Source: Leidyana gryllorum EB-2025a (lineage: Eukaryota > Protista > Apicomplexa). From it: 64,000 bases of DNA. Under the pieces are notes generated by a model. The model saw only the letters and a list, made by a program, of their open reading frames with translations, made no database searches and was not told where the DNA came from. Shown here piece after piece: positions 38,526 through 60,200 of this stretch. Made by a program: the position numbers and the translations under genes. Each line of letters opens with the position of its first letter. The stretch's first letter is position 1. The stretch covers positions 248,001-312,000 of the forward strand of contig JBLWGC010000109.1 of the NCBI GenBank assembly GCA_048772705.1. Reading direction: 5' to 3'.

Positions 38526-40925
38526 ATGAATGGAGAGCTGGAGGACGTTGCCTTGGGTTTCGCTACGTCATGGAGTCAACTGGGTGCGTATTGTGAGAAG
38601 CCTGGGGGTTTTGGGCTCGCCACCGGTACGCCTTCCGCTGACGGGGAAGGAAGATGCTGAGGCCACTGGGAAGGGCCCACGTAGTACCCGTTACCCTTTT
38701 TCTTCTCTCCTTAAGCATGGTTCCCCGAGTCAGGTCTATGTTGGGGGAACAGTACTCTTCTGTTTCGTACTTCTGGTCTTACAAGTACTGCACGGGCACC
38801 CCTCTGCCAAAACTGCTACCCACTTAAGAAGACTCAATGCGGGCTTATCTCCGCCAAGCAGGTCCGAGTCGTTCCATCAGGACACTGAGTATAGTACCGC
38901 GGATCGCGGGGCAGACGAGGATGATGATGAGCAGTATCCACTTGGCGAGTCGACTCGTCTTCAGAGTCGATGGTGTAACACTGGAGAGGCTTTCCAGCAG
39001 ATGACCGAATCGCTTCTCGACAATGCTCACGTGGATGCTCCCCCACTGGTCTATATTGAAGACTTTGACACATTGCCATCTGAGTGTCGCACTATACCCG
39101 ACATCGCTGATGCAATCGCAAACGACGACGCCGATGCCTTATGGCGTGACCTCCAGTGTACTTCGAGAGATATTAGACAAAGCCTTGGCCAGCATCCCAC
39201 CTTCCAGCCGATCACCATCGGCATCAGCACCCAACTTAACAAGATATCATACGCTGACATACCATCAGGAACTTGGAGCATAATGGTCACACAATGGTAT
39301 CTGTGGACTGATTATCGGCTCCTATTCAACGGAACTGAGGTGTGCGACTACTGGGACTTCAATACTGACTTCCTCCAAGTGCCCATAGACAGAATGATAC
39401 ACAGCTCCGTTTGGAGCCCTGATATGTTCACTCTCAACTCTGCTGATATGGATACGTGGGCCAGCTCTATGGGGCGTATGGAGCAAGCTCGAATCTACGA
39501 CAGCACATTCTACAAACGATTTGGATATAACATGGCTTGGCGCTCAACCCTCACTGTGCGAGCTGTGTGCGACTTTGATCTGAGCCGCTTTCCCTTTGAC
39601 GAACAAGTTTGTTCTGGAATATGGGGTCCCATGGCACACGAAACCATGTACTCCCGTCTCCACCCCCGAGCATTCCCTATGATCCACAATTCGACGGTCA
39701 GAACCTCAGACTGGAATCACCGTCGCTCTGTATTTATATTTCAACAATTCGGAGCCGCTATCGACTTGCGTATCGTTGACTACGACCTCAGTGTCAGCAA
39801 TCGACCTCTCAACCCCACTGAAGAACGCCGTAAGCTTGTGTGTACCCATTGTGTAAGGCCGACATTGCCAAATCCATAGACAATCTACTGGGAGAGAATG
39901 TACCATACGTCGAACTCATGATCCACTTCCAGCGTCAAGGTACATTCTACATGATGAACTTTATCTTACCGATGACCACCATGTGGCTATTGGCCTACAT
40001 TACCTTTTTCCTTCCCTTTGAAGAGTGAGTTCCAATGAATGTGGTTTTCGTGGTTCCAAATTGTGGACCACGGACTCTTATTTCGGCAAGCACAAAGCCC
40101 GGTGAATGATCGTTTTCGATTTCAGTCATGATCGCCTCGAGATCATCACCTCTGTGGTTTGGACTAATACCGCTATAATGTTTCTGACCGCCGCGACGCG
40201 TCCTGCGAATTTTGTGGATGCATGGATTGATGTATTCCAGGCTGGTAGTTTGGTGCTTTGTATGTTTCCTGCTATGGAAGCGGTGCTGGTAGCACGGTTG
40301 CAGGCCCATATCCAGGAGCGGTGAGCCTCTGGCAGAGGATGTCATTTATTCGTTGCCCTTCCTATCTTAGACTGGATCAACTTCACGCTGCCTATGAGCA
40401 TTCGCGGGCGAAGTACAAGGCGAAGATGCGCCAGCTGCATTTGTTCGAGCTGCAAGAAGAATATCTGAACAAAGAAGCAGCCGGCACAGGTAGGGAGCAG
40501 AGTGTCACCGCACTCGTGTGTGTCGTTCGGAGACATCATGATTTGTTGCAGGCCTGTTGGCTTGTAGAAGGTCTGTTTTGTCGGACAATAGGACGGGAAC
40601 ATCCCCCGTAGACAATGATACCGGGTTAGCCGGTCCGGATCCAAGTGCGATTTACGCGTCAGGGGCGAAAGTATGGTACCCTTCTTCGATTCCAGGAGAG
40701 TCTGCATCTTTCTCCAACACAACGGTTTCGGAGTGGGATGAATATGACGCGTTCATACCACCACCCCCACCACAGACGGACTCATTTGCCTTGTCGAATT
40801 TCATTGATCGAGCTTGTCAAATCAGCTATCCAGGTTTGATCTTAGCGTTCCTAGCGACTCGTTTCGCGCCCCTTCGGTCGGCTGGTAGGCGTGTTGGGTC
40901 TGAGTTTCTCGCACATCTTTATTAA
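38526..40925 (+). CDS. Cys-loop pentameric ligand-gated ion channel subunit, multi-exon
   Basis: WTDYRL, VWSPDM, CDFDLSRFPFDEQVC (C-x13-C, 39568-39612), pre-M1 RQGTFYMMNFILP, M2 DRLEIITSVVWT..RP, M3, M4 IDRACQISYP; introns (e.g. 40025-40125, 40321-40370) keep frame; exact start uncertain. Confidence 0.9.
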
Positions 40926-40946
40926 GGCTCCGGAGTGACGGGTGTG

Positions 40947-41741
40947 ATGACGATTCTGAGGGGAATGACCATTGCGACGACGACATTGGGGTCGGTCATA
41001 GTTTGTACTTTTGCTTCGTTGTGGGCTTTGGCTATTCTGTCCTACGTAAGGCGGCTAAGGGTGGACACATTTGTTGTTTGGGTGATAGATGATGAGGCTT
41101 TTTCCGAGTCGGTTCACTTCGCTCTTAAGTCATCTCAAGCAGCATGAAGACTGATTTGTTAGATGCTTTTCGGTAGTGTGGCAGGTAGTGTTGAGAGTAA
41201 AAGAGTGCGATTCGCTGAGTCCTCTCGCAATTCGAGCACATTCTGGTTTTCGTCTAAGCAAAGATGCCCCCAAGGCGACAGAGAGGAGCAGCCTCCCCCG
41301 ATCGCGACGACGACGACCGAATCTGATACCGATGATATGTCAGTCAATGATGAGGAAGAGGAGGAAGCACAAGAGGGCTATGTTTCCGACACTGAATCCG
41401 AGGGAACAGCTAGCTTCAGAGGCGACACACTCGACGATGACAGTGGCTTCTGTGCTAGCGGATCGGATTCGGATTATGCTAGAGCGGAAGTCCCTCCGAG
41501 CAAGTTCGGCATGTCAGGCTACAGGCTGAACAAGCTCACTACCCTCTTACCTGGACAGCTCCCACGCCGCGCGGAGACTGTGCGTCTCGATGGGAGCCCA
41601 ACTGTTGGCGCTAGAAATAGGATCAGAGCACGAAACAACAAGGGACCAGAAGCGGAACCATATACTCGCGGACAGAATGCCACTGATGAAGGTGCCGCGT
41701 ACTTTGACTTCCCACTAATCTCCAAAGAGAAGCTAACGTAA
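40947..41741 (+). CDS. Single-TM protein with acidic disordered tail and RVxF motif; intron ~41112-41162
   Basis: Hydrophobic VIVCTFASLWALAILSY; phase-0 intron joins it to the 41163 ORF; KRVRF. Confidence 0.55.
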
Positions 41742-57290: not shown

Positions 57291-60200
57291 ATGGTGAGAT
57301 TTCAACTTGAAGGCCTCGAAGTATTCTTCCCCTACGAATATGTCTACCCCGAACAGTACGCCTACATGAGGGGTCTCAAGGAGACTCTCGACACCAAAGG
57401 CAACAGCGTACTGGAGATGCCCACAGGCACCGGCAAAACTGTCGCAGTCTTCTCACTCATCACAAGCTATCAACTGGCAAACCCGCATCTGGAAAAGTTC
57501 TACTTCTGCACACGAACTGTCGCGGAAATGGAAAAGGCTCTTCTCGAGCTGCGTGGAGTCCTCCGATATAGAGATGCTGAACTCACAAAAGACGGCGATA
57601 TTGAACGACTGAAACGAGCACCTTGTCTGGGACTCGCCTTGTCAGCCAGACGAAACCTGTGCGTTCATCCTGTCGTCTCCAGGGAACAAGACAGAGACAA
57701 GATCGACGAAAAGTGTAGGGTACTCACCGCTCCTTGGGTCAGACGAAAAGAAAGGCCCGAAGGGGGCGAAATCGACATCGAGGATCTTGATCCGGACACA
57801 TGCAAACTGTGCCCATGGTATGAAAATCTCGACGAGAGATGGCAGCCGGACTTTATACCCAAAGATATCTACACTGTGGATGACCTCAAACGATTTGGAG
57901 CTACCGGCAAAAACCCCATCACGGATGAGGATACATCCAATCCCAGAAGACATGAAATCCGGGGAGAAGAGACCTTACCAAAGTTCTGCCCGTACTTCGC
58001 AGCGAGGAGGCTCGTCCATGTTGCAGACATACTGGTTCTCAACTATCAGTACGTCCTTGACCCTAAAGTCGCTCAGGTGGCTTTCGGAGGCACCGGCTTG
58101 TATAGTTCGAAGGGGCAATTGCTCGTGGGAAATAGTAAATTGCTCAAACAAAAGGGTGCTCCAGGCGAGCTGACCAACAGTGGAGCCGGTAAAGAGCCAA
58201 ATGTTATTGTGTTCGATGAAGCACACAATATTGATAATGTGTGTATCGAAGCGTTGTCCATCAATATCACCATTCTGGACCTTGAAAGGGCTCGATACAA
58301 TATAAAACGACTGCAGGAGGCTGTCGGCATCGCTAAAAGAACCAATGCTGCGCAGTTGGCCCAAGAATACAGCCGATTGGTTGGCGATATGTATAATCGC
58401 CCTGCTGATCGTCCACAAGAGCAAGTCGACTACGAAAGTTTCCTGGAAGAGCATTTGGCTTCACCAATCTTGCCAGAAGAGCAACAGATGCTCCTGAACG
58501 CAATGCCGGGGAACATCAGCAAAGCCGAAACTTTCATCATACATTTGAGGGCGGTAGTGGCTTTCTTGGACCAGTATGTGAGGAGGTTCGAGGTGCTGTC
58601 GCAAGGCACAGTTAGCTTCCTCGCAGCTCTGGAGGAAGCGAGCAAAATTGAAATGGGGTCGCTCAAATTCTTCTATGAACGTTTAAAGTAAGGCCGACAT
58701 TGCGGATCGTTTGATGAGTTTTGCATTGCAGGTCCCTATTTGTGGCACTACAATTGACAAATCTGGAGGAATTCATGCCGATCGCTAAAGTGGCTGACTT
58801 CTGTACTTTGGTCGGCATGTATTGGAAGGGTTTTTGTATCATTGTAGATCCCTACCCCGAGGCTCCTGGAATGTATGATCCTGTGATCCAACTGTGCTGC
58901 CTGGATGCTTCGTTGGCGATCAAGCCAGTCTTTGAGCGGTTTCAGTCGGTCGTGTTGACGAGTGGAACAATTTCACCGTTGACTTTGTACCCCAAACTGC
59001 TCGACTTTGAGGTAAGAGATTCCAAAGGTTGGGCTGGCTCGATTACATGCGATGGAACCTTCAGTCCCATATAAGTCGTTCATTCCAAATGACAATGGAC
59101 CGAAAATGTATAATGCCAATGGTGGTGGCCAAGGGGCCTGATCAGGTGAGTGTGTGGCATAGTCTGTTTACAATTTCGCACACGATCTACAGATTCCTTT
59201 GTCGTCAAAGTTTGAGCTGCGAGAGGACGTTTCGGTGATTCGTAATTATGGATTGCTGTTAACAGAGTTCGCGAAGAACGTTCCGGACGGTTTGGTGTGT
59301 TTCTTCACGTCTTACGCCTATATGGAAATCGTCATTTCGCATTGGTACCAAATGGGTATCCTTGCCGATGTCATGCGGTACAAGTTGATTTTAATGGAGA
59401 CGAAGGACATTGTGTCAACCACTTTGGCGCTCGACAATTATCGACGGTGTTGTGATTCTGGCCGGGGTGCTGTCTTCTTTTCAGTGGCTCGAGGGAAGGT
59501 GGCGGAAGGGATTGATTTTGACCGCCACTACGGACGGGCTGTGATTCTCTTTGGCGTGCCGTTTCAATATACGTTATCGCGAGTTCTGAAGGCTCGACTG
59601 GAATATATGCGTCAAAACTATAACGTGCCCGAGAATGAATTCTTGAGTTTCGACGCCATGCGACAGGCCGCGCAGTGTGTTGGACGAGTTATTCGGTCCA
59701 AAGCCGATTACGGTCTGATGGTCTTTGCCGACTATCGATACGGCAAACAGGACAAGCGAGAGAAAATGCCTGAATGGATCAAAACAAATCTGGACTCTCA
59801 TCATACCACCCTTTCGGTCGATGTCGCCGTGAGTTTGCATCGATATCTTTCTATCTGATCATTGATTTCCAGGTGGCTGTGGCACGGCGGTTTCTGCTCG
59901 AAATGTCGCAACCCTTCACGATGAGTGCCATATCGCGACTCGACAAGAACAGCTTAGAGAAGCTCTATCAGTTGACTCAAAAGAAGCGGGCGAATGCGAA
60001 GGCAGCAGCTGCTGCTCAGTCAGCCCCACCCGCCAAGTCGCCTCGCATAGACCCGTCTTCAGCACCCAATGACGGCACCAATGCGGCTGGTGAGGCCCCA
60101 ATGGCCGAGGAGCCGGACGCAGCCCCAATGGCCGAGGAGCCGGACGCAGCCCCAATGGCCGAGGAGCCGGACGCAGCCCCAATGGCCGAGGAGCCGACTG

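Follow-up and report, generated by a model that had tools for sequence, protein, structure and literature searches.

A Cys-loop receptor subunit gene with a probable fifth transmembrane helix in the gregarine Leidyana gryllorum

The pentameric ligand-gated ion channels, abbreviated here to pLGICs, are usually regarded as receptors of animal synapses whose plan of four helices is fixed, and gregarines are parasites of invertebrates. In a 64,000-nucleotide stretch of the genome of the gregarine Leidyana gryllorum EB-2025a (assembly GCA_048772705.1, contig JBLWGC010000109.1, forward-strand positions 248,001 to 312,000; hereafter the window, whose own numbering we use), an initial annotation placed a complete Cys-loop channel with four transmembrane (TM) helices at 38526-40925 and assigned it to an apicomplexan-like protist. 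Judged from its sequence and from structural models, we found that this locus is a genuine Cys-loop pLGIC subunit gene. Our favoured explanation as a whole, which we hold with good confidence, is a cation-type subunit gene from a protist clade that has two paralogues elsewhere in the genome and probably encodes a fifth TM helix (M5).

The long open reading frame (ORF) of the channel starts at 38530, and the ATG at 38526 from which the annotation had begun is out of frame with it. The gene up to the fourth helix (M4) is laid out as follows, with paralogues 2 and 3 being the two other loci described below.

38530..39879, + strand: pLGIC gene ORF, 449 residues, followed by short pieces to 40925
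38530..39829, + strand: exon 1, 433 codons plus 1 nucleotide, from ORF, Pfam and model; N-terminal extension, hydrophobic segment and nearly the whole ligand-binding domain to the tip of loop C
39830..39879, + strand: intron 1, 50 nucleotides, GTAAGC..CATAG; restores the frame into exon 2
39880..40024, + strand: exon 2, end of loop C (VPY), the Arg ahead of the first helix (pre-M1 Arg) and M1 with its conserved Pro
40025..40125, + strand: intron 2, 101 nucleotides, GTGAGT..TTCAG; same position in paralogue 2
40126..40320, + strand: exon 3, M2, the M2-M3 loop with RP...WIDVFQ, and M3
40321..40370, + strand: intron 3, 50 nucleotides, GTGAGC..CTTAG; same position in paralogue 2
40371..40489, + strand: exon 4, first part of the cytoplasmic M3-M4 loop (post-M3 helix)
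40490..40551, + strand: intron 4, 62 nucleotides, GTAGGG..TGCAG; required for the frame of M4
40552..40884, + strand: exon 5, the remaining M3-M4 loop and M4 (FIDR...YPG...)

When introns 1-4, all GT..AG and 50, 101, 50 and 62 nucleotides long, are removed, the exons join into a single frame; if intron 4 is left in place, the frame meets a stop at 40611. The exons were searched one by one, each as a separate piece, and all of them match, in order, an unspliced orthologue on a 3999-nucleotide Logan contig from SRR11177099 (L007). Exon 2 is 46% identical to this orthologue (E 7e-14), exon 3 is 65% identical to it (E 6e-29) and 38% identical to paralogue 3, and exon 4 matches the orthologue sequence directly after M3 (E 4e-5). 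The intron pattern of the L007 gene is different: a single intron interrupts the Cys-loop and the stretch from loop B through M5 is free of introns. A gene caller had split this gene into two.

Exon 1 passes the Pfam profile Neur_chan_LBD over residues 226-381 with 50.5 bits, where the cut-off is 26 (E 2.3e-13), a score far above what chance would give, and the same match was found by a six-frame search of the genome. To place the family motifs we used a 60-sequence ectodomain alignment (A1) and a second alignment (A3). The motifs named in the initial annotation (WxPD, C-x13-C with FPFD, pre-M1 Arg, M1 Pro and a long M3-M4 loop) were all located.

39409..39423, + strand: VWSPD, the WxPD motif at the start of loop A; W and P invariant or nearly invariant in A1
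39568..39612, + strand: Cys-loop, C-x13-C with FPFD; C151, P159 and D161 invariant and C165 nearly so in A1
39616..39639, + strand: loop B, GIWGPMAH
39924..39938, + strand: pre-M1 Arg (HFQRQ)
39945..40019, + strand: M1 with Pro
40130..40204, + strand: M2
40241..40300, + strand: M3
40800..40874, + strand: M4 (IDR...YP motif), matching the orthologue and the clade consensus IDR..YP

In A1, the Pro of WxP, the first Cys of the Cys-loop and P-x-D are invariant columns, and the Trp of WxP and the second Cys are conserved in at least 90% of sequences; in A3, the same holds for R289, P301, R322 and P345, which do not vary. The gene has the pre-M1 Arg, the M1 Pro, the Arg at position 0' of M2 and the M2-M3 Pro, and its M1 to M3, loop and M4 follow in that order. 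An AlphaFold model of the ectodomain (residues 197-433, built from A1) has a predicted local distance difference test score (pLDDT) of 77.8 and shows the immunoglobulin-like beta-sandwich fold. In a Foldseek comparison with the PDB, the top 500 matches all have E <= 0.001, and the best 50 of these are all ectodomains of pLGICs or of acetylcholine-binding protein (GABA-A, nicotinic, 5-HT3, AChBP). A sequence search of the PDB returned only pLGIC matches, the best being an annelid receptor (8bx5, E 2.8e-7), and a feature search of the ESM Atlas agrees with the assignment to the pLGIC family. The model of a full-length, transcript-derived relative from Cephaloidophora (P0010) aligns to the nicotinic acetylcholine receptor (nAChR) and to 5-HT3A with Z of about 20, from residue 59 to about 580, that is, from the ectodomain through M4.

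The membrane part of the gene tells against this assignment in one respect: the profile Neur_chan_memb matches neither the exon pieces of the window (47 and 64 residues, which are too short for it) nor the contiguous transmembrane part of the L007 orthologue, and the M4 exon has no Pfam match. However, a segment of paralogue 3 does pass Neur_chan_memb (33.8-36.8 bits), and we tie the transmembrane domain of the window gene to the family because its M2-M3 region is 65% identical to the orthologue and 38% identical to this passing paralogue.

About 200 residues lie ahead of the ectodomain, and no Pfam family matched this N-terminal extension in our scan. It includes a weakly conserved W-C...PP.xYIED block that is common to the window gene and its orthologue P0002 (E 0.002). 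It also holds a hydrophobic segment at residues 69-89 (38734..38796, + strand), with a hydrophobic counterpart in the corresponding N-terminal region of P0002; from its sequence, the segment may be a signal anchor or a recessed signal peptide. An export-motif-like RRL follows it (38797-38845) and is not conserved, being LRH in P0002. The ATG at 38526, 4 bases upstream of the channel start, opens an overlapping ORF of 44 codons (38526-38660) that may be an upstream ORF or meaningless.

To place the gene among its relatives, we searched 1.84 billion representative sequences exhaustively and obtained 77 matches at E <= 0.001, for which names were taken from three cluster look-ups. A word-index protein search, a method that is insensitive for this family, gave no match for exon 1, and a 20-sequence profile retrieved only 3 proteins by it. 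The best match of the exhaustive search is a transcript of Gregarina sp. Poly1 (54% identity). Other named relatives are from Cephaloidophora cf. communis (transcriptome shotgun assembly GHVH; PMC10739892), Rhytidocystis pertsovi and dinoflagellates, and proteins of Porospora cf. gigantea A and B (KAH0484050.1 and KAH0471202.1) are annotated as hypothetical. Nicotinic subunits of a sea urchin form a separate, distant group among the matches. A quick maximum-likelihood tree (IQ-TREE), whose deep nodes have weak support, unites the window gene with P0001, P0002 and P0003 in a clade supported at 100%, and this clade adjoins the remaining sequences from gregarines, Porospora and Rhytidocystis. As for the two paralogues, they fall with Cephaloidophora and Porospora sequences and with Gregarina and Porospora sequences, indicating that three subunit lineages predate the divergence of these gregarines. 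Dinoflagellate-like and animal sequences are placed elsewhere, with the animal-like ones as a separate group. In the dinoflagellate-like P0009, P0017, P0018, P0020 and P0024, a large N-terminal region comes first and the ligand-binding domain does not begin until residue 350-600; in the three that were scanned (P0009, P0017 and P0018), this region has no Pfam match.

These relatives bear on whether the gene could have come from an animal, either as contamination by the host or by recent horizontal transfer, since animals are, judged by profile score, where the family is best known and the best sequence match in the PDB is an annelid receptor. We consider such an origin extremely improbable. 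The closest relatives are protist sequences, with identities of up to 54% to gregarine, Rhytidocystis and dinoflagellate sequences as compared to about 20-25% to animal ones; the animal-like matches stand apart in the tree and lack M5; and the three paralogues sit on large contigs, all with introns of 39-101 nucleotides. A neighbouring gene in the window gives the same picture:

57291..58691, + strand: first large exon of an XPD/Rad3 helicase gene, a 466-residue ORF with DEAD_2 and HBB

The best named matches of this XPD gene are from Gregarina sp. Poly1 (63%) and Porospora (45%). Since both the channel and its XPD neighbour have gregarine relatives, the channel is a gregarine gene and host contamination is excluded, so that the assignment to an apicomplexan-like protist rather than a contaminant, which had leaned on short introns and flanking genes, is borne out. 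From the sequences compared, the distribution points to a retained myzozoan family and not to a one-off.

Across the whole genome (15.5 Mb, 237 contigs), we found exactly three detectable pLGIC loci, the window gene and two others, on contigs of at least 312, 334 and 466 kb.

G000:C36:33155-35700 (L002, L008): paralogue 2, with a clear signal peptide, Phe in loop B, Val at 9' and Glu at 20' of M2
G000:C213:230600-233600 (L004, L009): paralogue 3, with Trp in loop B, Leu at 9' and an intron inside the Cys-loop

The three paralogues share the intron positions after M1 and after M3. Paralogue 3 has a very long M3-M4 loop, as does its 1048-residue orthologue in Gregarina sp. Poly1.

The 3' end of the window gene differs from the initial annotation. 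The TAA at 40923-40925, with which that gene model ended, is followed in the same frame by 73 more open codons that end exactly at a GTAAG donor. The features of this region are as follows.

40885..40926, + strand: probable in-frame intron 5, donor G/GTAGGC; contains the TAA at 40923-40925
40926 and 40935: candidate acceptors of intron 5, giving 42 and 51 nucleotides; a 117-nucleotide alternative ends at 41001
40927..41045, + strand: probable exon 6, with M5 at 40986..41045
41046..41052, + strand: GTAAGG donor directly after M5; same position in paralogues 2 and 3

The segment at 40986-41045 is strongly hydrophobic, with a peak in the Kyte-Doolittle plot, and over 32 residues the region shares 41% identity with the final TM helix encoded by the L007 orthologue (E 3e-6), with which tblastx agrees. 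An alignment of relatives (A2) shows a fifth hydrophobic segment with the consensus F..LW. In these relatives, the spacing from YP in M4 to F..LW is 41-45 residues as counted by eye, and removing 42 nucleotides from the window gene leaves 45 residues between the two motifs. At the corresponding place, each paralogue has a short intron that keeps the frame and contains a stop: 39 nucleotides in paralogue 2 (GTGAGA..CCAG, L008:456-494) and 48 nucleotides in paralogue 3 (between M4 and M5, L009 ~1566-1613). In paralogue 3, the spliced M4-M5 reading agrees in layout, residue for residue, with the transcript-derived orthologue P0013, and the exon after the donor that follows M5 matches the tail of P0013. 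A GTAAG donor lies immediately after M5 in all three genes (TAT/GTAAGT in paralogue 2, CAT/GTAAGT in paralogue 3). The M4-M5 intron thus has a length that is a multiple of three and contains one or more in-frame stops in each gene (39, 48 and, in the window, probably 42 or 51 nucleotides), so that its retention would end the protein right after M4. A tblastx comparison of the regions 3' of M5 in the window gene, the paralogues and L007 found no common tail exon.

Two other ways of splicing this region were considered. The 117-nucleotide intron uses the sole YAG acceptor (41001) and is less likely, because it leaves 20 residues between YP and F..LW as compared to 41-45 in relatives. Splicing from a donor at 40834 would remove the conserved M4, and this option was discarded for that reason.

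We also counted the hydrophobic segments after the ectodomain by simple hydropathy. Eight of the nine animal-like matches have four segments, with a tail of 0-14 residues after the last one. In contrast, members of the apicomplexan group typically have five segments and a tail of 26-64 residues, and the other protist matches mostly have five with a tail of variable length. Relatives overall have a fifth hydrophobic helix and a tail of 26-165 residues, and so depart from the canonical four-helix topology, in which the protein ends outside the cell a few residues after M4; the window gene would share this departure if intron 5 is spliced out. In the P0010 model, a fifth helix spans residues 582-614 (pLDDT 72-86), beyond the end of every PDB alignment. 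Taken together, a five-helix architecture is probably common to the protist clade and absent from the animal-like matches.

The 3' end can be read in another way, in which the TAA at 40923 is a true stop, the product is a canonical four-helix subunit and the M5-like ORF downstream is a decaying relic of an ancestral helix. Several observations weigh against a spliced fifth helix and partly favour this reading. All splice sites of the window gene, that of M4-M5 included, were placed from frame and homology; the acceptors that fit the spacing are AAG and GAG, while every other intron here ends in CAG or TAG, and no YAG acceptor gives the expected spacing; and the residues just before the TAA can be aligned to relatives (...SE..LY). 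For M5 as a membrane-spanning helix, the evidence consists of hydropathy, conservation and a monomer model, and a count of positive-inside charge bias gave no clear orientation, with several sequences mis-anchored. We nevertheless think a true stop unlikely, given that the 73 open codons hold a helix with 41% identity to the orthologue's final TM helix, that the open frame ends exactly at the donor common to both paralogues, that both paralogues have a stop-containing intron at this place and that removal of 42 nucleotides brings back the spacing of the clade. By these sequence comparisons, M5 likely belongs to the mature window protein, and the mature mRNA probably loses a short in-frame intron together with the annotated stop and gains M5 and a further tail. 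Since the stop is probably intronic and M5 lies beyond it, neither "complete" nor "four TM helices" is probably a correct description of the mature product: the long ORF, its motifs and M1-M4 stand as described, with the start moved to 38530, the end probably beyond 40925 and a probable fifth helix added.

We numbered M2 back from the invariant R-P at 22'-23'. The window gene has Asp at -1', Arg at 0', Glu at 2', Ser at 6' and Trp at 9' (40160-40162). Positions -2' to 0' read H-D-R, with no Pro-Ala-Arg motif, and D/E-R at -1'/0' is conserved across the clade; by this signature the pore is predicted to be cation-type. The residue at 9' is Trp in the window gene and L007. Paralogue 2 has Val there and paralogue 3 has Leu, and the remaining relatives have Leu, Ile or Phe. 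In the binding site, the loop-B position that the initial annotation read as Met (39631..39633, + strand, seven residues after the second Cys of the Cys-loop) lies opposite the Trp of GSWTH in the HMMER alignment to 8bx5. The L007 orthologue also has Met here and the Gregarina sp. Poly1 orthologue has Leu; paralogue 2 has Phe, and paralogue 3 and most relatives have Trp. The loop-C Tyr (VPY) is retained, and no CC pair occurs anywhere in exon 1 or exon 2, so both residue-level observations of the annotation are confirmed, and the gene has neither of the marks of alpha-type nAChR subunits (loop-C vicinal Cys and loop-B Trp). The conclusion drawn from them, that the ligand is probably not acetylcholine, is weak, since a paralogue with a loop-B Trp may supply the binding face in a heteromer.

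Only P0001, P0002 and P0003 are orthologues of the window gene, and P0001 and P0003 are fragments of the ligand-binding domain without M2. Trp at 9' was seen in P0002/L007, the one orthologue with sequence of the transmembrane domain, and a non-aromatic loop B was seen in P0001 and L007. These oddities raise the question of whether the protein conducts at all: a ring of Trp at 9' might not conduct, which also counts against a working cation channel, and the protein might instead be a subunit that is silent or purely modulatory, or its signalling as a receptor might involve no ion flow. That 9' Trp and the missing loop-B aromatic are confined to this orthologue group, with Leu, Ile, Val or Phe at 9' in the other relatives inspected, would fit such a role. 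However, both features are conserved in orthologues that are 40-65% identical, which indicates selection on a working protein, and the residues that couple binding to gating (-1' Asp, 0' Arg, M2-M3 Pro and pre-M1 Arg) are all kept, making a non-conducting protein distinctly improbable in our view. Because Trp 9' and the non-aromatic loop B are kept at this level of identity, we favour a working, specialised subunit.

In the mechanism that we propose, pentamers of subunits would sit in a membrane that faces either the outside or an organelle's lumen, a small ligand bound between ectodomains would open a cation pore that is possibly permeable to Ca2+, and opening would feed the ion and Ca2+ signalling of the parasite. 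The window subunit would act as a specialised member of a heteromer that also contains the two paralogues. We infer that this role is more likely than that of a stand-alone, agonist-binding homomer because the loop-B aromatic is absent and 9' is Trp, and both features recur in orthologues. The suggestion that the channel senses cues of the host gut is a conjecture of the initial annotation. A bolder proposal, of which we are very doubtful, is that myzozoan Cys-loop receptors are a five-helix class with a cytoplasmic C-terminus and tail, in which retaining the M4-M5 intron would give a four-helix form and splicing it a five-helix form, and in which the subunit with Trp at 9' and Met in loop B would tune the gate of a heteromer.

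A survey of the genomes of protozoan parasites reported no homologues of nicotinic receptors and no pLGICs (Prole & Taylor, 2011; PMC3194816), which fits the statement in the initial annotation that such channels are not known from Plasmodium or Toxoplasma. Jaiteh, Taly and Henin (2016; PMC4795631), in the available parts of their paper, describe Cys-loop pLGICs in unicellular eukaryotes, with 'Alveolata' listed, class the protist receptors as cation- or anion-type by their M2 signature and give their biological role as not known. Neither the available text nor the available part of the supplement names an apicomplexan. The sequences in that study, according to the same text, were trimmed after the fourth helix, and a fifth helix is therefore not described there. 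Such channels are not mentioned in the papers on the Porospora genome, the chromerid genome or apicomplexan single-cell transcriptomes, and full-text literature searches returned nothing relevant on ligand-gated channels of gregarines or on a fifth TM helix in pLGICs. As to novelty, the channel is undescribed in the gregarine literature that was searched, but homologues are already present in public Porospora, gregarine and Rhytidocystis data. We therefore regard the locus as a genuine member of a known superfamily, found in a lineage from which such genes are not described, and it is lineage-retained, not an isolated oddity.

These data suggest that a small and old complement of three Cys-loop subunits, with relatives in dinoflagellates, has been kept by the apicomplexans that branch early (gregarines and Rhytidocystis). 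Such retention would imply that the lineages of medical importance have lost them, and it would offer a handle on the ancestral coupling of extracellular signals to ion signalling in Apicomplexa. In two features, the apparent fifth helix and the conserved Trp at 9', the clade departs from the textbook architecture in ways that can be tested. As a drug target the channel has little practical value, since the hosts of gregarines are invertebrates and the family was not seen in human pathogens.

Among the closest known systems are the Porospora, Gregarina, Cephaloidophora and Rhytidocystis sequences, which fall in the same apicomplexan group of the tree and share M4, M5 and the RP...W.D.[FY] motif; those from Porospora, Gregarina sp. 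Poly1, Cephaloidophora and Rhytidocystis differ in belonging to the other two paralogue lineages or to more distant members. The protist receptors of Jaiteh et al. (2016), as far as the available text describes them, are likewise Cys-loop pLGICs of unicellular eukaryotes. Alpo4, an orphan pLGIC of Alvinella pompejana (PDB 8bx5 and 8byi), is the best sequence match with a solved structure and likewise has no known agonist; in contrast to the window gene, it is an animal protein with four TM helices and it keeps the loop-B Trp. The animal nAChR and 5-HT3A, which are the best structural matches of the P0010 model (Z of about 20) and of the window ectodomain, share the beta-sandwich, WxPD, C-x13-C with FPFD, the pre-M1 Arg, the M1 Pro and an acidic -1' residue, as well as the M2-M3 Pro, a long M3-M4 loop and an IDR-type M4 motif. 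Identity to them in structural alignments is only 13-20%, however, and the window gene lacks the loop-C vicinal Cys, has Met for the loop-B Trp and Trp for the Leu at 9', and carries an N-terminal extension of about 200 residues and, probably, a fifth TM helix with a tail.

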